From Vitrella brassicaformis CCMP3155 (lineage: Eukaryota; Protista; Chromerida): a stretch of 64,000 nucleotides of DNA. The stretch covers positions 62,001 to 126,000 of the forward strand of contig CDMY01000239.1 of the NCBI GenBank assembly GCA_001179505.1. Reading direction: 5' to 3'. Numbering within the stretch: the first letter of the stretch is position 1; every line of letters begins with the position of its first letter. Below are positions 48,386 to 62,400 of this stretch, piece by piece. The notes beneath the pieces were generated by a model that made no database searches, was not told where the DNA came from, and was given only the letters and a program-made list of their open reading frames with translations. Made by a program: the position numbers and the translations under genes.

Positions 48386-49346
48386 ATGGAGAAGGCGACC
48401 CACCGCTTGGCTCCCTCGGGCCATCAGAGCCTCACGAATCCATCGTCGGCCGACGCATCCCTGAGTACCAATGAGTCGAGCTTGAAGCCGCCGACGTTCT
48501 TCTCCAGTGCAGTGGCGTCGATGGCCCACTGCCCGCGTGAGCTGTGGCTGATTTTCCTCCTCAAGTACCTCGAGTCGTACGCCTACTTCGTCTTCTCCTA
48601 CACGCTCATTCTCTTCCTCTCGGACGAGTTCGGCTTCACCGACGAGGAGGCCGGCCTGGCGTACGGCATCTTCGGCATGCTCGTGTCCGTCTACGGCTTT
48701 GTCATCGGCATCATCATCGATATCCTGGGGGTCAAGTGGAGCCTCGTGGGCGGCACAGCCATACTCTTCTGCTCCCGACTGATGCTCACCTTCACCACCG
48801 ACGTCCACGTCCTGACGCTCATTCTCTTCACGGCACTGCCTGTGGGCTCGGCCATGGGCATCCCCGTCATGCAGGTCAGCTGGGGTGGGGGAGGGAAAGA
48901 ACCGAATCGATGCAGGCCCGACAGTGATGCTGACGATGCGATACGATGTGTGTGTGTTGTGTGTGTTGTTGTGCGGTGTGTTCAGATTGGCATTCGGCGG
49001 TACACTGACGAGGGCAACAGGAGCCTGGGCTACTCCATCTTCTACGTTATGATGAACCTCGCAGCCATATGCGCTGCACCGGCAATTGGTAACACCCCTC
49101 CCCACACACACAGCCATGGACACAGACATTCACACACACGAAGCACATCTATATGTGTCGGTGTGTGCAGATGCCTTCCACGAGGCCTTTCCGACGGGCG
49201 TGGCCATCGCGTTCGGCGCCCGCACTTACAGGATATCCTCATTCAGGCTGCTCATATTCACCGGGGCCGTCATGACCCTCGTCAGGTCAGCCAGGCACAC
49301 ACAGGGCACGAACACACACCAGACTGCAGAGAGAGGCCATTGTGTG

Positions 49347-49381
<35 letters not shown>

Positions 49382-51393
49382 ATGTGTGTGTGTTCCATGC
49401 AGTTTCGGCATATCGCTGACGTGCATGCGGGAGGTGTCGATGTCGCCACAGGGGCTGGTCTACAGAGATACGGGCCGGGAGAAGGCCACACGCGACACAA
49501 ACACCCAGCAGAAGGGGCCCTTCGGCGCATTCAAGTGAGCCATCTAGAGGGGAGGATGTTTGCTGGGCCATGTGTCTGTGTCCATGTATGTGTGTGTGCA
49601 TCAGGGATGTGTTGAACCACCCCAGCTTCTGGCGGTTCTTTTTGCTGGTGGTGTTGCTGTTGGGCGTGCGCATCATATACCGACACCTCGACGCAACCTT
49701 CCCAAAATACATGGTGGGAAGGGCACCTCACACACACAGAGAGAGGAGCATACGCACCCCGATGGGTGCTCATATGTGTGTGTATGTGTGTATGTGTGTG
49801 TTTAGGTGCGTGAGTTCGGCAAGGATGTCATGTTCGGGTCGATCATCGCCATCAACCCCCTGTGCGTGGCCATAGTGGTGCCCCTCCTCGCACCGCTCAA
49901 CATGCGCCTCCACCCACTACAGATGATAATCGTCGGCGCGTCGCTCTCCGCGCTCTCGCCCTTCCTCCTCGCCATGGGACACACCTACACCACTGCCATT
50001 GGGTCAGCCAGGGAGGGAGGGAGGGGCCGCTGTTGTCAATCTCTCTCTCTCTCTCTCTCTGTGTGTGTAGGTTTGTGACCCTCCTGTCGTTGGGCGAGGC
50101 GATTTGGTCTCCGCGATTCTACGAGTACACCGTCACCATTGCCGAAAAGGTTAGTAGACGAGGAGGTGGCGGTGGCGGGGAGGCAACGCAGCACAGACAT
50201 ATCACATGAGTGTCCCCCTCTGTCTGTCTGTGTGTGGTTTGTGGTGTGTGATTGATTGATCAGGGTCGTGAGGGCACTTACATGGCGCTGGCGTCGACGC
50301 CCATGTTCATGGCCACACTAGTGACGGGCGCCATGTCGGGCTGGCTGCTCGACACGTTCTGCCCAGAGACCGGTGCGCACAGACACAGGCAACCAACCCT
50401 TTACTGTACTTGGTCACTCGACACGTGTGCGTGGTGCAGGCTCGCGTCACTCCGAGATGATGTGGTTCATCGTGGGCTGCGTGAGCATCACATCGCCGCT
50501 CGGCATGGTGCTCCTCTACGAGATTATCGAAGAAAAGGTCACACTCGCGCACACACACTCGCCCTCTCACACACCTTGTCGCACGCCCAAGGCGCCGTGT
50601 GTGTGTGTGTGTGTGTGCAGGCTCACCGTGTGCACTCTGCCTCGTCAGTGCAACTAAAGCTGACGGCCGACGAGCGTGAGCAGGAGAGCCTTCCCAGCGA
50701 CAGCCGCCATGTGGATGGGCTGCTTAAGAGCTCCAACTCGGTCCCTCGCCTGTCTGCCTACGCCACTCTGCCGTCGACCGTCACGGCCACTGACCTGAGC
50801 ACCAGCATCACGACGGAAGAGGTCAAACCACACACACACACAGAGAGACAGCACTCTCCAACCACAGAGCGCATGATATCTGCCTGCCTGCCTGCCTGTG
50901 TGTTGGTCCTCAGCCTGTCGCCGTCGTCACCACCGCCACCACCGAGAAGACCGGCCTGTTGGCCTTTCCACCCACCAGCAATAAGAGGAGGGACAACCAC
51001 AGTGCGAACGACCACCACCACCTCATTCACCGCCGCAGAGCCGACGACACACAGACGGCGGCCGCGCCCATCGAGGCCATCATCCCCGACCCGCTGTACA
51101 GCAAATATGACAAGGGGCCGGCTGACACCGTCAAGGCGGTGGCGGGAAGGCCGCCCTGCCCACACGGGGTCAGTTTCAACAGCACGGCTCCGGCCACCGA
51201 TGAGAGTGAGATGCTGGAGTCGGGCACTGGGGGGAGCGGGGAAAGCTTCGGGTACCCACTCGCTGCCCACAAACTAGGTACGTGGAGTGCCGCCCACACA
51301 CACGCAAATTCTTGCGCGCCCGCCGGATGCATGCCTGCTGTGTGTTGTGTTGTGTGTTGTCTTTTGCTGGGTGCAGTTGATCGCTGTGCATAG
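48386..51393 (+). CDS. Major facilitator superfamily transporter, proton-dependent oligopeptide (POT/PTR)-like
   Basis: ELWLIFLLKYLESYAYF...EFGFTDEEAGLAYGIFG, GIRRYTDEGNRSLGYSIFYVMMNL, FGSIIAINPLCV, LSLGEAIWSPRFYEY, GREGTYMALAS. Many TM helices and an S/T-rich C-terminal tail. Confidence 0.88.
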
Positions 51394-52320
51394 GTAGGTA
51401 GGGAGATAGCTGGGGCGGCGGCGGTGTTGCTGCTGCTGTTTTGTGTGCATCGAATGAACGGTCCATCGATCGCACCAACGGTCGGCAGCGCAGTGGAGTC
51501 ACAACATGCTCGGGCCAGCTCGGCTCCACACCGATGCGATCGATCACGGCAGACCTTGCTCAACAGACAGAGAGAAGGGAGGGTGTGTGAGGGGTGTCGT
51601 GTCGACGATTGCTTAGCAGCATCAGCCGTGCTGGCGTCGTGGTGTCTTTCTTATTCCCTGTGCGAGTGTGCATGTCTGTCTGTGGGGCATTCATTCACTC
51701 ACTCATTTCTTTCTTTCATTCTGTGTACATACATACATCATACATACATGCAGACGTTTGGGTGTCTATAAATAGTCAGTCAGTACGGGAGAGGCATTAA
51801 CGACGTGTTGGTTGCTCTCTCTGCGGGGGGTGGTCCATCCATCCCATTCATGTATAGGGGGGAGGGGCTGCTGCCTGCATGGCATGGCATGGCATGGCAC
51901 ACTGGAGTGCTCTGCGTGTGTCATGTATCGGTCCATTGGATGAACATTATCCATGCGTGTGCGTGTTTGCGTAGGGGGAGGGAGGGAACTGATCATGACA
52001 ATGGCTTTCTCAGAGGCCAGGGTCAAGGGTTCCTCAGTCTACGGGTTTGGGTAAGGCATCGTGAAAGCGAATAGAATCCTGCCTTTTTCCCTTCGGTTCG
52101 GTCCTTTTCGCGCTTTCCGAGATCTCTGCCACCTCTTTCGGCACGTCAGCTCTCGGTTGCGTGCCTTTCGCCCCAGCGCCCACCCCACCGTGCTCACCTC
52201 TCAGCCCCTCCAAGTCACCCGCCAGTCGAGGAGGCCGCGTAGGACGCCACTCAGGGCTCCGCTGACCGCCGGATCTGCGCTCCCCTCCCGCATCGCACGC
52301 CGTCCTCAACTCTCGCCAAG

Positions 52321-54853
52321 ATGTCTGTCAGAGAGCTGCTCGACAGCAACGTCGTGCGGCGTGACCGGTTCGGAGGAGATGGAGGGCACTACGACGGGCA
52401 GAACCGGAACGCCAAGGCCATCAGGGCGCTGACCAACCTCGTTAAAGGTACGTGGGGATGCATGCGACACAACATGCACTGTGTTTGGGTGTGGGTGGTG
52501 GTGCGGGCGTGTGGCGGTGGGACAAGTCGTGAGACGGGCTGAGACAGATGTGGGTGTGACGGGCGGGAGGGTGGGGGTGTGTGGTGTGGCGGTTTGGACG
52601 CGTGGTGTGTGACCCTTGTGTGTCTGTGTGTGCATGTGTGTGGGTGTCGGTTTCAGTCACCGTTGGCGCCAAGGAGAAGGGCCAGGAACCCCAACTGCAC
52701 ATCTACTCAATCAAGTGAGAGCACTGGACATGCACTGACCGACCGACTGAGTGGTTGAATGGCCTCCTTCTCTCTCTGTGTGGGTGCAGGTTCCACCCAC
52801 CTCTGCCAGGTAGGTGTGGGTGTGGCGGCGGTGTGGGGAGGTGTGTATCGGCTGTGTGGCGTGTCCATCTGTGTGGGGCGGTCGTGCAGGTGACTTCCGC
52901 GTCCAGTCGAAGATCATCAACACGGCCGGAGCTGACGGCATCAAGACCGAACTCCGACAACTCAACCTCAACGGACCCCTCTTCACCGTACGCACACACC
53001 GCCCCGCCCCCAACACGCCCACACACACACACCCCTGCACAGCTGCCTGTTTCTCTCTCTCTCTCTCTCTCTCTCTGTGGTGTGTGTGGATGCGTGTACA
53101 CACCTGCCTGCAGGGGACGGCGTTGCTGACGATCAACCCGACGGGCTGGGAGGGCCAGCGCGAGGCAAAGACCTTCGACAAGGTCCTGGGCGGCACCAAC
53201 ACGACGGTGGAGGTTGCGTGGAGGGTGGCCGTGTCCCTCTCGCCCATGGCCATCACCCCGCAGACCCACTCTGACGAACGAATCCGCGCTAAGATGATCA
53301 ACGCACAGGTGGGTGCCGNNNNNNNNNNNNNNNNNNNNNNNNNNNNNNNNNNNNNNNNNNNNNNNNNNNNNNNNNNNNNNNNNNNNNNNNNNNNNNNNNN
53401 NNNNNNNNNNNNNNNNNNNNNNNNNNNNNNNNNNNNNNNNNNNNNNNNNNNNNNNNNNNNNNNNNNNNNNNNNNNNNNNNNNNNNNNNNNNNNNNNNNNN
53501 NNNNNNNNNNNNNNNNNNNNNNNNNNNNNNNNNNNNNNNNNNNNNNNNNNNNNNNNNNNNNNNNNNNNNNNNNNNNNNNNNNNNNNNNNNNNNNNNNNNN
53601 NNNNNNNNNNNNNNNNNNGGGGGGGGGGGGGGGGTGTGGTGGTCATGTCTTGTGTTGTGTCTGCCTGGGTTGTGTGCAGAGTTTCTTCGTCGACAATGCC
53701 GTGCGCTCGGCGCTACGCGCCAACGAAGTCCTGCATCAGCTGCGCGACAGCTTCTACAAGTACGTGTGTGTGTCGTTGGCCACCACACACCACACCGCAC
53801 CTCACCGCACACCAATCCCATCCCATTGTGTCTGTGCGTCTGTGTGGTTTGCCGGACAGGTTGCATGAGGCGCGTGACATCTCGGTGACGCAGGCGCTCA
53901 AGCTCTCCCTCGCCAAGGGGTTCAAGACGGTAGGTCGACTCTCGAGGTTCGCCATGATTGGGGGCGGTGTGGGCCCCTTGGGGTCGAATCGCGGGACACG
54001 CCATACAGATTGGGAGGCTGCATGTGGTGGTTGGTTGATTCAGGCGGCGTTGTCCATCGCCCGCGGCCCCCATGTCGCGCTGGCACTCAACCACCTGTGG
54101 GCCCTCAACTGCACACACACATACACATACACGCAACACATACCATCACACTGATCATATGTGAGTGTCTGTCTGTCTGCCTGTCGTCTGTGTGTGTGTG
54201 TGTGTGTGTGCAGCATCAGTCAGTACCGACACCTGCGACAGACAGACAGACAGACAGACCCCCACATGTGATCAATGTGATGGGATGTGTTGTGTTGTGT
54301 GTCTGTGCGTATGTGTGTGTGCAGTTGAGGGCGAGGCCCGCAAGTTGATAGAGGACATCTACAGCCGCACCAGCGGCACTGTGCAAGAGAAACGACAGGC
54401 CGTCAAGGAGGCACTCGAGGGACGGTACGCACACACACACAGAGAGACAGACAGACAGACACTCGCGCGTGTGTGTGTGTTGTGCAGCACCATCACGACC
54501 AGCCACGTCAAGCAGGCCTACACCATCGTACGCACACACGCCTCACACACTCACTCACTCACTCACTCAGTCACCCACCCACACTCACACGCGCACATCT
54601 GTGCTGTGCTGTGCTGTGCTGTGGTGGATGCAGCACGAGATCGACTACACCAAGACAGCCGACAGGTCACACAAACAAACACCGCAGTCGATACGATAAA
54701 CCAATAATGCATTGAGTCACTGTCTCCCTGTGAGTGTGTGTGTGTGTGTGCATTCCTGCTCACTGGCTGCAGTTTGTTTGAGTCGGGCGGCGTTCAGACA
54801 TCGTTCAGAACAGTGAGCAGAACACGCTCATGGATGGATGGATGGATGGGTGG

Positions 54854-54890
<37 letters not shown>

Positions 54891-57800
54891 TTCTCCACGC
54901 GCTACAACATTGATCTCCCCCCAGGCAGCGTCCGCCCATGCTAGTACGGATGCTGCCTGCATCCACTGACACATCAATCACACTCTGACTGAAATTTTTG
55001 CCCCTCTCTCTCTGTTCTGTGTGTGCAGGTGTGTCTGCGTGGCCGTCGCGAGTGCGTCATTCCACCTGCTGTGGTCAGTCAGGCTGCATAGCACTCACTC
55101 CACACACGTGGCTGTCTGTCTGGATTTCTCTCGGTGGGTGATGTGTGTGATGTGTGTGTTCCCGCAGTGCCGTGTGACGGGTGCGCCCAAGCGGGGTGAC
55201 GAGCGCTCCCTACAACTCGTGCGCCGCACCATGATCTCAGAGACGTACGCACAACCCCCTCTCTCCCTGCTCCCCCGCACTTTTCCCCCTGTGTGTCATG
55301 TCTGTGTGTCTGTCTGTTTGTCTGTCTGTGTGTATGTCAGTCGTATGGATCCGGCCCAGCGCATGAAACACCTCAAGGGCTGCTGCCTCTGTTCGGCAAT
55401 CCAGCTGGCCGACCAGTTCCTCCAGGCACGTGTGTGTGCGTCTGGGGGGTTGGCAATGGATGATGAATGGCATTGTGAACCGACCCATGGATGGACGGAT
55501 GGACGTGTATGTGTGTGGATGGTCAGGTGGAGGGCTGGGAGCTCGACAAGAACCTCTTCAAGTGCGACATCGGCAAGAGAGACGTACGCGAGATGCCACA
55601 CACACACACATACACAACACCAGGACACACACAGAGATGTCCATGCCATATCCCTCCCTCCCTCCCTCGTGCGTGTGTGCGTGTGTGTGTGCAGCCGATC
55701 GACCCCACTATGTTGGACCAGCAGCAGAAGCAGTCGGTGGCCAAGCCGCCACCCCTCGTCGTCGACCAGAACAGCATCATGGCCGTGTGCGTCATCCAGG
55801 AGCAAGGCGAAAGACAGCTCGGACCCTTCCTAGGCGCACTCAAAACGCAACTCGACACGTACGCCACACACACACAAACACCCTCTCTCTCTCTTTCACA
55901 CACACGGAGGGATGGATGGCACAGAGGGATGGATGGATGCCCTCTCGTGTGTGTGTGTGTGTGTGCGTGTGTACAGTTACCGCGTGCGTGTGGCCTCTGA
56001 GCCATTCTGCATCCCGGTGGGGGGTCGTGGCAGGCCCGAGGACAGGTGGCGAGAGGCGGCGCAGCAGGGCGTCGAGAGGATGCTCCAAATGGGCAACATG
56101 GGCCCCAAAGAACACGCTCTCGGGTACACACACACACACACACACACACACGTGGGGGAGTGGGAGAGGCAGAGAGAGAGCTGTGCGTTGACTGCATCCG
56201 TGTGTGTGTGTGTGTGTGTGTGCAGTTGTCTGCTGCTGGCGATCATCCCGGACAGCCTCGAGAAGGTCGTCTACAAGCCCATCAAGAACGTCCGCAAACA
56301 CACACATACACTGGAGGGATGGACGGGCGGATGGGATGGGGGGATGCGCTCCCTCCCTCTGTCTCTGTCTGTTGTCCTCAGGTGTGTTACGTGCAATATG
56401 CCGTCAGCTGCCAGTGCATCAAGCGCGGCACCATCGAGAAGAAGATGACGGTGGGTACCCACTGAGTCAATCGCGCACTTGGCCATTGCTCACACTCATC
56501 CCTCTGTGTGTGTGGTGTGTTGATGCCATCGATCAACGCATCGCATCAGGTGGTGGCTCCCAAGCTGGTGACGCAGATCATCTGCAAGATGGGCGGCCAC
56601 GGCTGGTCGATCCCGGCCATCAAAGGTGAGAGCGATGGGGCGAGTGACACACAGCACAAGACACCACACCGAACAACACGGACCCACACAATCCCCCATG
56701 CGTGTGGCGTGCGTGTGTGCAGATTCCATCAGCCCGCCCGACAAGGGGCCCAAGCCGACAATGGCCATCGGCATCAACATGGGCAAGTGCCTCAGCAGCG
56801 CCATGTGTGCCTTCACCGCATCCGTCAACATCGAGTACGCACCCAGTCAAACACCCCCACCTCCCCCCACCGCCCAGCCCATTCACCATTGAGGTGTGTG
56901 TGTGTGTGTGTAGGTTCACGAGTTACGTGTCGGTGGTGGAGTTTCTGCAGCAGGACGACCCTGCCGTTGGCCGCAAGCGGAGCTACAAAGAGAGGGAGGC
57001 CGAGGCGTTCAAGTGGTGCTTTCCCAAGTTCGTCCAGGCCTTCGCACGGTCCAACGAAGGCAGAAAGCCTGCGTAAGGAGGACTCACCACACAAGGAACA
57101 GACACAGCAGACAGACGGGCAAGCTTGTGTGTGACTGTGTGACTGTGTCGGTCGGTCAGCCGCATCATCATATACCGCGATGGCGTGCCCGAGGCCGAGA
57201 AACCCGACTTCTTCAAGTGAATGAGTCATCGCATCGCGGCCATGGATGCATCTCTCTCTCTCTGTGTGTGTGTGTGGTCAGGTACTACATGAATTCAGGC
57301 AGGAAGGGCGAGCCCGGCGCGATCCCCACCGCACTCGACCAGCTGCGGTCCCAAGAGGGTTTCGAGAACTACAACCCTGCCGTCCTCCTGTGCATCGTAC
57401 GCACACCACCACCCACACACACACACAACACCCGCTCACATAGTGGATGGATGGATGGATGGATGACACACCCCCTCCTCCCTCTCTCTCTGAATATCTA
57501 TGTGTGTGTGTGTGTGTGTGTGGTGCAGGTGAGCAAGCGTGGCCCGGGTGCTGTGAAGTTCTTCCAGATCACCGGAGAGGGCAGGGACGGCACTCCACAG
57601 GTAGGCGCCTGAACGACTGAGGGGGGGGTGGGGGCCTTCGGTTACATCCGTTGTGCTGTGTGTCTATTTTGTGTTGTGTTGTGTTGTGTTGTGATGTGTT
57701 GTGTGCAGGTCAGGAACCCGCCCGAGCGTTGTGTGTTCGATCGTGACGTGACCTACGACTACAAGTTCGACTTCTGTAAGCACCTTTGTTTGCACCCACA

Positions 57801-58330
57801 CGCGCAGCGCACCCACAGGCATACGACGTAGGTAGACGTGTGTGCATCCATCTCCCTCTGGATGCATGTGTGTGTGTCTCCATGATGTAGACTGCTGCCA
57901 TCAGCGCGTCACTCAGGTACGCACGCACAGCAGACAGACAGACATACAGACCCATGGATGGATGGATGGATTTATGCCACCGAGCAGGGCTCCATCACGC
58001 CGACATACTACGACGTCTTGTACAACGACTTCATCATCAAGAAGGAGGGGCAGGAGGGCGGCATGCAGGCAGCCAAAATTCAGGAATTCACACAGCAATT
58101 CGCGTCCATCTACCAGAACTGGTACGTTGGCTGGAGGAGTGGGGGTCGTCGTATGGCTGGCTCTGTGTGTGCGTGTGTGCGTGTGTGTGTGTGTGTGTGT
58201 GTTCAGGCCGGGTGGCCCGATTCGGGTGCCTGCGCCACTCATATACGCCGCCAAGCTGTCAGACATGGTGGCCGACCACCTGCGAGAGCACTTCAACCCA
58301 CGCCTCGAGAGCTTTCTGTTCTTCCTCTAA
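52321..58330 (+). CDS. PIWI: PIWI-clade Argonaute protein (N-PAZ-MID-PIWI), about 32 exons, non-canonical catalytic tetrad
   Basis: PAZ: SFRT|YFSTRYNIDL, PPAV|CRVTG. MID: VVYKPIKN|VC...SCQCIKRGTI...TQIICKMGGHGW. PIWI: TMAIGINMG, RIIIYRDGV, IVSKR, VRNPP...DF|YCCHQRVTQ|GSITPTYYDVLYND, IYQNW|PGGPIRVPAPLIYAAKL...LESFLFFL*. Confidence 0.95.
53319..53618. other. Assembly gap (300 N)
   Basis: N run next to a poly-G tract in a PIWI intron. The flanking exons are phase-compatible (0/0). Confidence 1.
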
Positions 58331-59411
58331 GCCAACACACCCATACTCGGCCACACCTACGTGCGCATGAAGGTGCGTGCATCGCATCCACACACGCAGA
58401 CGAGCGCACCAAACCACCCACACCCACCCGAGCAGCATATTTCTCTGCCTGCCTGCCTGCCTGCCTGCTTGTGCGTGTGTGTGTGGTCGTTCAGCAGTGG
58501 TTTTTCCGTCCGTGTCGATCGCTTTGAAGGAGGGGCAGTGGGATGGCATACATACAGACAGTTTTGCAATACGTGTGGGGGGTGGGTGCATACAAGGAGG
58601 AGAGATACACACGATACACACCCTGTGTATCGTCAGCACATCGCTAGCTGTGGTTTTCCCCCACTCACTCACTCCCTCACTCACTCGTCGTCTCGTCAGC
58701 TGTCTGCCTGCATATATATGGACACTTGGCGGCCCACCGAGTGACTCTGTCCCTCTCTCTCCGTGGCGTGTGTTGCTTGGGCGCGCTTGTGCGAGTAAGT
58801 GTGTATGTGATCTTCTGACAATGCATTGTGGGGTGGATCTACTGTGTGAAAGTGAACCTGTGGTCGTGACAGATGTGAGCTGGTGACACTGACACGTCAG
58901 CGCATATGTGTTACGACCACACGTCGCCCGGCACACAGTCTGCATGCCGCCGATTTTGCACCACATACGGGTGGTGGTTTCGTATGTGTTCCGGACACGT
59001 TTGTACGTGCTTGCGTGACATCCCGGGCACGAAAGAGAGAGACACGCCTAGGTTTTTCCGCCATTCATAGGGCCGCCGTCGTTGTGCATACATTTGTCCG
59101 TAGGTCTGTCTGTCTGTCTGTCTGCAGAGAGTCTGTCTCCCTCCCTCCCTTTCTGACTGCCTGGATGTCTCTGTATGTATGTATGTAGATACCTATTACA
59201 CCATCATGCCGAGTCAGAGAGGAGTGATCGTAAGTAGGGTGACCAATCGCTTTATGCACGCACGTGTGCACATGCGCCATCCGCGTACATATGTGGACAC
59301 AAATGATCCGTTTTGGCGCGTGACGACACAGACGCCATAAGCATCGATCGATACAGGCCGCACACATAGCAACAGCTTTACTGTGTGAAACCACGCACGC
59401 TTACCGATGTC

Positions 59412-62400
59412 ATGAGTGGCGCCAACTTGAGAGGGGCGCGGCATGGAGAGGGCGTAGGGAGGGATTCTCGGATTTCCACATCAGTTGTCCCACATCGACT
59501 GTCGATTCATTCGCGCATGCAAGAAGGACGCCCCCATAGGCCCCCATGTCGAAAAGATGTTCCTCGTATTCTCTGCTCTCCTGTGTCGGTTTGCACTGGC
59601 CAACGGGCTGCGACACACACCGTCAGCCCGGCGCTTCACACTGGCAGGGGCGATGTGGCTCAACGTGACGTAAGCGCACAGACAGCCTGGCCCAAAGAGG
59701 AAGCAGAAGCAGGAGAAGGGCATCACCGTTTCCTTTGAACACTCATGTAAGTAGGTCTGTGTGCAGCCATGGACAGATGCAGACAGAGACCCACAACACA
59801 CATGCATATGCGTGTGTGGGCGTGACATCGATGTGATATACATCCCTTCAGACTGCAATCAGGTCAACGATGTCTGTTTCTCGTGGGACTATCCCGCTCC
59901 GTCTGAGAAGCGAATGTATAGCCTGACCGACGACAAGTTTTCGAGGTGCGTGTCACACACAATCCATATGTATGCAGCAGACCGCAGGCAGGCCACTGCG
60001 CTGTTTGTGTGCATGTGTGTCACGGACAGTATAATTCGGAACATGGACGCGCCTGAGCGAGGCCTCGAGTGCGAGAGGCGCCAGGTGTTCTGCCCCGAAG
60101 ACTACGACGGCGAGGGGGAGCTAACCTACCGGGGTCAGAATCAGACTGCCGCATGTCCGGGCCCCAAAAAGGAGATACTTCGGTGTTGCCGCTCGTGGGA
60201 CGCCTCGAACTTTGAGCACTTCTTCATCGACGACACCACTGCTGCACCTGCAGAGGAGACAGACGAAGAGTGAGGGAGCCAATGAAAGGCATTCCTTCGT
60301 GCGTACGTACTTATGCGTGCATCTGTGTGCAGGGCCCTTCCTCTGAGCGAGGATTGCTGTAGCAGTCCCAAACACGCCCCGGCCACCGTTACCAGCGTAT
60401 GTATGTATTGTATGCACCCACGTATAGTATCCAGCGCCAGACCAGACAACGCAACGGGAGGGCAAGGCAAGTACCCGCCTGCCCTGCCTATGTAGTGCTT
60501 GTCTGGTGTGTGACCAGCTCTGGGACGTTTGGCAGCTCCTCGCACAGGCATGCACTCACTGCAGCCCAGCCACCTGACCTTGATGTCGTGTTGTCTTGTT
60601 TGCTCGTCTGCTTGTTTGCTTCAGCTTCACTACGTCACTTTGCAGCGGACGGCGAAGTGGCACAAGTGGGAGACACCGCATATGCACTGGGGACATCCGC
60701 AGGAGGGAGGTGTTGAGGAGCCGCCGCGTGTGAAGGCCATGAACGATTGGGTCAGGACGTGGTTGAAACAGTACTGGCCGGTTGTCATGGAAGAGGTGAG
60801 TGACGTGACAGTCATCCAGAATGCTCCCTGCCTGCACGCGCCCTCATGGCGGCCATGAGCTTTGGATGGGCAGATGACCGTGTGGAGACGGATTCAAGTG
60901 GCCACACGCATACACATACACGCGCACACCCAGCACAAGAAGTTCATCGCGTAAGCAAGAAAGGGCCGATGGAACGAATCAGGTCGGGTGGCTGCGTCCC
61001 TCCCTGCCATCCATTTGTCGATTGATGCTCAGGCAGGTGTGCCGGTTCATCGGGCAGGCCCGTCTGCCCGTCCCTTATGACCACACCACCCGAAACCGCC
61101 TAGCGGCGCTGTACGTCCGCCCCGATCTGTGGGAGGAGGACCCTTTAGCAGATACTCTGAGACAGCGTGAGGCCTGCATCAGTGTGCCCAAGACATGGGA
61201 GATCCATGAGGCGACTGAGTGTGACGCCTTCGCAGCCCGCGAAGAACCCCGGGCCTCGGAGAAGACAGCGACTGAGGCAGGTAGCGAGGGGGAGAGACAA
61301 AGTGAGTCTGAGGAGGAGAGAGACATTGAGACGGTGTGCGTGGAGCCCACGTGGGAGACACCGGTGTTATTCGATTTCCCATCGTACGCCAACCAGCTAT
61401 GTGAGGGAGAACTGAGGGATGCCTGAATAATTCATGTATGTGTCGCTTGCTGCTGACGATGTACGGCACGTGTGCGTCTGCGGCCCATGTGCCTTTGCAG
61501 GTGGTCCTCATGGCGCGTGCAAGGCCTATGACATGTACAACTTCGAGTTTGCTGACTTGTTCTGGTTGAGTGGGCCTGCTGCTATCTATCGATGCGCTGT
61601 CTGCTTACTCTGACTTGCCACATGCAGGTGCCGAAGAGGGACGAGACGTCGGCGGCATGGAAGAAGCTGTTCGACCGAAAGACCAAGGAGAAGTGCTGTG
61701 CGGTAGGCACGAGACATGGAGGCACAAACGCACACAAACCCAACACAACACATGCGCCTTTCCCTCACACGTGCGCGTGTGCATTGACTGACTCAATCAG
61801 GGCTATGTGCCGATGCGGCTCATCGAGTTGTGGCGACTGGCTTCCATCGGCTACTTCGAGACAGAGAAGCTGGGAGAAGATGCCATCAATGAAGCCAAGA
61901 AGGTTGTCGAGGCTGCCTTGTTAAGGTTTCGCGTCTCTGCGGCGCTTCAGAAAGGTCTGGACAAATGTAACAACACAGATTGATCCATCGTGTGTCGCCG
62001 AGTGCGTGTCTTCACGTGTGTATCAGGTCCTCTGCGTTTTGTGTGCAACTTTATATCCAACTACATGGCCAACTCACTGCTGGAGGACGTCAAGGCGGAG
62101 GACGTCAAGGACGTCAGGGGAGATTTTGTAGGCGACGCTGTAAAGATCAAGATCGGCCTAAAGCTGGTGCTGCAGCCAGACATCGAGGACCTGGTGCTCG
62201 AAAAGCAAACGGGGGGGAAGTCGCTTCTTGAACTGGGCACATGTAAGCGACTGACTGGAAGGGGAGCCACATGCTACGAAAGAATGTATTGATTGACGGG
62301 TGCGAATGTGGGTGAATAGGTGTGCCAGAGGACATGCTTGCCGCCTACGATGCTTCGTTCCCCACCTTCAAGCCTCCCTCCGATGCCGACAAGAAGGCCC

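Follow-up and report, generated by a model that had tools for sequence, protein, structure and literature searches.

Argonautes that have lost slicing while keeping an intact MID pocket are already well known, and the gene described here, which we call copy A, is probably an ordinary, decaying example of them. It lies in a window of 64,000 nucleotides (nt) from Vitrella brassicaformis CCMP3155 (assembly GCA_001179505.1, contig CDMY01000239.1, positions 62,001 to 126,000; coordinates below are counted within this window unless another contig is named) and has the exon content of a Piwi-type Argonaute. Among the precedents, the Argonautes of the WAGO clade in Caenorhabditis elegans have expanded in number, lack slicer residues and work through partners, and genes in the family turn over. 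These proteins differ from the Vitrella copies in belonging to another clade and another kingdom, and the Vitrella expansion is represented by two checked copies.

Drosophila Piwi (PDB 6KR6) resembles copy A in being of the PIWI clade and in keeping the Tyr/Lys/Gln/Lys pocket, the Gln metal ligand and the C-terminal Leu (PMC7015924); it is among the best PDB matches, and two of its tetrad positions, the fourth among them, are likewise non-canonical. It is a natural non-slicer with a DVDK tetrad that serves as a guide-directed binding platform on nascent transcripts, and it slices once the canonical residues are restored (PMC7015924). However, Piwi has lost the Glu and the His and kept both Asp residues, whereas copy A has lost the first Asp and the His and has probably kept the Glu; and Piwi, a protein of the animal germline, is clearly under selection, while copy A carries frame-breaking lesions.

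The best-studied chromerid relatives are represented by Toxoplasma, whose single Argonaute, Tg-AGO, has no catalytic residues but retains those of MID that hold the 5'-phosphate; it binds small RNAs and functions even though it does not slice efficiently (PMC2877743). Its triad reads E/S/E, and a case has been made for regarding it as Piwi-like (PMC9935688). Copy A shares both the lost catalytic residues and the retained MID pocket, but reads N/D/A at the triad, and while Tg-AGO has an N-terminal RGG region, no RG or GR motif occurs in the first 60 residues of the copy A protein (N-terminal Arg-Gly or Arg-Ala motifs serve animal proteins that bind PIWI-interacting RNA as sites for Tudor partners, and are not required outside animals). 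The Twi family of Tetrahymena provides an alveolate PIWI clade outside the animal germline, with several paralogues in different roles, such as Twi12, which binds transfer RNA fragments and works with Xrn2 (PMC5340916); these are, however, ciliate proteins tied to nuclear dualism. Our literature search found no paper on Argonaute, Piwi or RNA interference in chromerids, and copy A adds a data point between the ciliate Piwi proteins and Tg-AGO.

A first-pass annotation of this DNA had described a PIWI-clade Argonaute with two replaced catalytic residues and an intact guide pocket, working as a non-slicing small-RNA effector, and had implied that such a protein would be a rarity; the latter was an overstatement given what is known of Tg-AGO (PMC2877743). 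It had looked only at the Piwi exons and consequently missed damage upstream. Most likely, the family is a real slicer-independent Piwi lineage, and copy A within it is either a recent pseudogene that is still transcribed or a gene of marginal function. In its fuller form, to which we give a probability of about 50%, our reading is that copy A belongs to a recently duplicated PIWI-clade pair whose ancestor was a non-cutting, guide-directed platform, and that copy A itself is now a young transcribed pseudogene or a gene with a minor productive isoform. The ancestral protein would have loaded 5'-phosphorylated small RNA with a metal ion and, if Drosophila Piwi and Tg-AGO are a guide, would have held target RNA uncut while recruiting other factors.

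Clade, guide pocket and catalytic tetrad

Copy A was assembled by eye, and checked by script, as a chain of 32 exons on the forward strand (52321-58330) encoding 869 amino acids (aa). Its public product, CEL95830.1 (A0A0G4EH75), has 513 aa and is a 100% identical substring of our model, residues 357-869. This product matches the Pfam Piwi profile PF02171 with an E-value of 9.8e-38 and 130.5 bits over profile positions 2-301 of 302. When it was compared with PDB by phmmer, eleven PIWI sequences (E 3e-24 to 1e-13) stood ahead of the best AGO (5.5e-10), among them human PIWIL1 (3e-24), sponge Piwi-A (2e-21), fly Piwi (2.8e-17), MILI (1e-15) and Siwi (4e-15), and the same order of PIWI before AGO was obtained for the C-terminal 140 aa. 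Judged by this ranking of PDB matches and by signature residues (the Gln metal ligand and the 25-residue distance to the C-terminus, both described below), the predicted protein is a PIWI-clade Argonaute, as had been claimed. No Pfam or PDB match was obtained with single exons of copy A; an ESM Atlas look-up with the 140-aa C-terminal fragment returned unrelated families at low scores, and AlphaFold2 on CEL95830.1 with a seven-row alignment gave a mean predicted local distance difference test score of 29. The PAZ domain is recognisable in the sister gene, copy B (PF02170, E 6e-13); in copy A its exons are short separate pieces without a match on their own, and the frame is broken at the 3' end of PAZ.

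The guide pocket is encoded as follows:

56272..56588, + strand: codons of the MID/PIWI 5'-phosphate pocket, Y528 (56272), K532 (56284), Q544 (56412), Q565 (56574) and K569 (56586)

In the HMMER alignment these five residues fall on the Tyr, Lys, Gln, Gln and Lys of the PIWIL1 pocket, which bears out the claim that the pocket is intact; the motifs VYKPIK, SCQC and ICKMGG and the FLFFL-stop end are all present in copy A. Tyr, Lys, Gln and the final Lys are spaced 0/+4/+16/+41, as they are in hAgo2. The pocket residues are the ligands of the guide 5'-phosphate, and the second Gln is a PIWI-specific metal ligand that is replaced by Lys in eukaryotic AGOs (PMC7015924); Q565 is this PIWI-type Gln, four residues before the pocket Lys and aligned with that of PIWIL1. 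The site is completed by the carboxylate of the C-terminal Leu, and the distance from the fourth tetrad position to that Leu is 25 residues in copy A, as in Piwi (818 to 843) and Siwi (874 to 899) (PMC7015924).

The four positions of the catalytic tetrad are found at:

56776..56778, + strand: Asn600 (AAC) in place of the first catalytic Asp, motif MAIGINMG, aligned with the GID Asp of PIWIL1 (9s0z) and sponge Piwi-A (7kx7)
56990..56998, + strand: Glu645-Arg-Glu647, candidate glutamate finger, from spacing and HMMER alignment
57179..57181, + strand: Asp679 (GAT), the retained RDG catalytic Asp, motif YRDG, from HMMER alignment
58250..58252, + strand: Ala844 (GCC) in place of the catalytic His, motif IYAAKL, aligned with the His of YAHKL; the C-terminal Leu869 follows 25 residues on

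An RNase H-type centre requires both Asp residues for slicing. The tetrad of copy A reads N600, E645 or E647, D679 and A844, that is N-E-D-A as against the DEDH or DEDD of slicers, and so falls short of the slicing tetrad; the codons and motifs given by the first-pass annotation are all in place, and the alignment with PIWIL1 and Piwi-A, which sets N, D and A on Asp, Asp and His, confirms its two replacements. The finger residue is ambiguous between Glu645 and Glu647: the 32 residues from Glu647 to Asp679 are the spacing found in hAgo2, Siwi and Piwi (PMC7015924), while HMMER places the PIWIL1 Glu on Arg646. Neither exon 24 alone nor a 63-aa peptide across the exon 23-25 junctions had a PDB or Pfam match, so that the register of the Asp-to-Asn change depends on the 513-aa alignment. 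The stretch from the MID Lys to the RDG Asp offers no other Asp that ends a hydrophobic strand, and no substitute acidic residue lies near either replaced position. No difference was seen at the AAC, GAT and GCC codons among the DNA contigs of two public runs that cover them. The DNA runs show variant letters at 58243, 58291 and 58307; strain differences were considered as the cause and rejected, since the letters come from copy B sequence aligned to copy A.

The predicted loss of slicing in the copy A protein is well founded by analogy: a single change at the fourth position, H874K, leaves Siwi with almost no slicer activity (PMC7015924), and together with the DVDK tetrad of Drosophila Piwi this supports the earlier prediction of a non-slicing protein. 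Copy B and the transcript-derived proteins likewise read GIN and YAAKL, and a more distant metagenome relative, copy C, reads YAAKL. The Asn and Ala replacements, being common to copies A and B, predate the duplication.

Lesions in copy A and the readings they bear on

Two lesions distinguish copy A from its relatives:

54930..54943, + strand: what is left of ancestral exon 14 at its 3' end, showing a derived loss of 1 nt together with a G-to-A change, from the A/B alignment (copy C reads GSVPPML, then GT)
55341..55425, + strand: exon 17, with derived deletions of 1 and 35 nt that leave 8 frame-shifted codons and remove 12 residues just after PAZ

Both are derived, since copies B and C agree in lacking them. 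In the ancestor, exon 14 had GSVPPML as its last residues, followed by a GTACGG donor, and copy A has lost one C; if the old donor at 54943/54944 is used, the frame of copy A runs into SVRPC and then a TAG stop in the PAZ domain. An assembly slip behind the 1-nt deletion was considered and is unlikely, as the sequence of the window at this point recurs in DNA contigs and in an RNA contig.

RNA records follow this course. An A-type RNA contig from one public run matches 54891-54943 without mismatch and ends exactly at 54943, and in MMETSP Transcript_16396 one open reading frame (ORF) ends in PPGSVRPC-stop while a second starts with MLVCLRG (ORFs P0006 and P0007). By the A-type RNA contig and the MMETSP ORFs, therefore, the observed messenger RNA (mRNA) has no single open frame from the start to Piwi, a TAG following codon 324. 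On our reading, splicing at the old donor after the exon 14 deletion would give the PAZ stop and the exon 17 lesion would scramble and shorten the linker behind PAZ; copy A would be on its way out, with full-length protein coming at best from a minor isoform. The upstream lesions, the PAZ stop and the dead sister copy make a full-length effector from copy A doubtful, and to that extent the working non-slicing small-RNA effector of the first-pass annotation does not stand.

Divergence between the two copies points the same way in part. The ratio of non-synonymous to synonymous divergence (pN/pS) between A and B is 0.57 overall (0.89 in the N-terminal to PAZ part, 0.35 in MID and 0.45 in Piwi), and pS is 0.07, near the divergence of the introns. 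With copy C as the third sequence, the copy A lineage has 9 synonymous and 18 non-synonymous changes (1 and 4, respectively, in the C-terminal Piwi part), the copy B lineage 9 and 27, and the branch to C plus the stem 43 and 45, counts that are small for the single lineages and reject neither neutrality nor constraint, which weighs against our reading. We read the pattern as suggesting a lineage that was constrained while already without slicer residues and was then relaxed after duplication. The first-pass annotation had named lack of expression and neutral evolution as marks of a pseudogene; the first is absent, since the locus is transcribed (the 3' untranslated region (UTR) of transcript contig L002 is 99.3% identical to it), while the pN/pS of 0.57 looks relaxed and the RNA splices to a stop.

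Further points also weigh against our reading, most of them by favouring the foremost alternative, that copy A still works and yields a full-length, non-slicing Piwi protein, the frame being restored by a new donor and the exon 17 change being tolerated in a linker. Such a protein would bind small RNAs and silence their targets by means other than cutting, in line with the first-pass annotation. The exon 14 deletion that breaks the frame at the old donor also creates an in-frame GT donor, AGC/GTCCGC at 54929/54930, which is the one used by the 869-aa model; on a rough matrix built from the other 30 donors it scores 5.3 against 5.1 for the old one, and a full-length isoform lacking five residues is thus possible. 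The 869-aa model is open and has GT-AG or GC-AG borders at all 31 introns. Its MID-Piwi half (513 aa in 17 exons) is open throughout and its splice sites are undamaged, the Piwi-domain exons being, as claimed earlier, open, in phase and bounded by GT-AG. The pN/pS values in MID and Piwi are below 0.5, the locus is transcribed, and exons are much better conserved than introns against copy C. Moreover, the RNA evidence consists of assembled contigs, probably from one data set, that are mosaics of A and B and so show the transcription and splicing of copy A, not its amount. On the other side, the PPGS/VCLRG junction that use of the new donor would create was not found in the RNA and protein records looked at, which show the old donor and the stop; the annotators, whose work included transcriptome profiling, began their model downstream of the lesion; the C-terminal Piwi part of copy A has taken up the four non-synonymous changes to one synonymous noted above; and the donor of intron 21 (56290) has gone from GTAGGC, as in copy B, to GTCCGC, whose unusual C at +3 might weaken splicing there. 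We consider a working full-length gene rather unlikely.

A second alternative retains only the downstream half: an N-truncated MID-Piwi protein, made from an internal start (that of CEL95830.1 or MLVCLRG), would amount to a short Argonaute that binds guides but lacks the N domain and most of PAZ. The 513-aa ORF of the annotation is undamaged and matches Pfam Piwi in full, and ORF P0007 does begin with MLVCLRG, but an internal promoter is without support, the ORF sits behind a 344-codon upstream ORF on the observed mRNA, and the 3' end of the guide would not be held without PAZ; we regard such a protein as improbable. That the protein still slices, by way of Asn600 and another residue in place of the His, is very improbable, for although weak Mg-dependent cleavage is attributed, in a report that PMC9935688 cites, to Tg-AGO, which is also without canonical residues, copy A has two of four tetrad positions changed and no acidic substitute near either, and the H874K change was almost sufficient on its own to inactivate Siwi (PMC7015924).

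Sister copy, metagenome relative and wider meaning

In favouring a young transcribed pseudogene or minor-isoform gene for copy A we are guided by its relatives. Copy B is CEM02727.1 on contig CDMY01000334.1 (L011 3001-9228), annotated with 857 aa. It was reached by a homologue search with a 446-aa open frame over exons 4, 5, 7 and 8, which led to an MMETSP transcript protein and from there to its cluster; two homologue searches with short stop-free frames gave nothing new. Aligned over at least 7.4 kb, A and B are 95.3% identical in exons and 92% in introns, with far more gaps in the latter. In copy B, exon 25 has lost 5 nt and exon 27 has lost 1 and 25 nt, the acceptor of exon 20 has changed to AA, and there are two in-frame deletions; the copy is frameshifted within the Piwi domain and is still transcribed, its transcripts ending early. 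The annotation of CEM02727.1 bridges the frameshifted stretch (after EAEAFK) and replaces a micro-exon by read-through of a CA repeat. To judge from its reading frame, copy B is a transcribed pseudogene hidden by its annotation.

Copy C comes from two short contigs (L003 and L013) of the metagenome assembly ENA ERZ893784 and belongs to a Vitrella-like organism, whose version of the gene shows 77-91% DNA identity. Against copy A, identity is 96-100% in exons 29-32 and 77-82% in the introns between them, with splice sites kept. A search of metagenomes with exon 25 gave chance matches only, and tblastn found no Argonaute in those loci.

A broader proposal, which we put forward tentatively, is that Vitrella has a fast-turnover PIWI-clade family that lost slicing long ago and yet stayed under selection (about equal numbers of synonymous and non-synonymous changes, 43 and 45, on the older branch), with copies A and B as fresh casualties of birth and death. 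If this were true, slicer-independent small-RNA silencing of the Piwi type would already have existed among the free-living relatives of Apicomplexa, and the slicer-deficient Tg-AGO may stem from it. Copy A also illustrates that an argument about catalytic residues drawn from Piwi exons alone can miss breakage elsewhere in the copy. The locus itself is of modest practical value; a survey of the whole family would be worthwhile for the larger issue of how many of the Piwi genes in Vitrella remain intact and whether a slicing member is among them.

Gene structure, public annotation and neighbouring features

Two public annotations can be corrected: CEM02727.1, which hides frameshifts, and CEL95830.1, which is short at its N-terminus. 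The following features complete the description of copy A:

55231-58330, + strand: coding sequence of copy A in the public annotation CEL95830.1, 513 aa only
54214..54218, + strand: micro-exon CATCA, 5 nt, across which transcripts read NHLIIEG
55426..55526, + strand: GC-AG intron with donor GCACGT, common to copies A and B; copy-B transcripts read FLQ/VEGW
58373..58494, + strand: 3' UTR intron, beginning 42 nt past the stop codon and skipped in transcript contigs L001 and L002

CEL95830.1 starts with MISETR in exon 16 and leaves out the 15 upstream exons (52321-55230), which match the N-terminus of copy B nearly residue for residue. The public record of contig CDMY01000239.1 is 100% identical to the window over 52231-61330. 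The gene region consists of many short exons and of introns rich in TG/CA repeats; 30 of the introns of copy A are GT-AG and one is GC-AG, and transcript-derived proteins of the sister copy (P0004 and P0001) confirm the exon junctions of our model. An assembly gap of 300 N (53319-53618) interrupts intron 5; the reading frame continues from exon 5 into exon 6, and copy-B transcripts confirm this junction.

The micro-exon is flanked by introns 54097-54213 and 54219-54324, which are mutual inverted repeats with arms 81-87% complementary, and copy C (L013, about 1450-1490) has the same coding sequence without introns. The arrangement suggests that both introns were gained recently, or that copy C has lost them. 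Directly upstream of copy A, at 48500-51270, lies a multi-exon gene on the + strand whose long hydrophobic stretches look like those of a membrane transporter.

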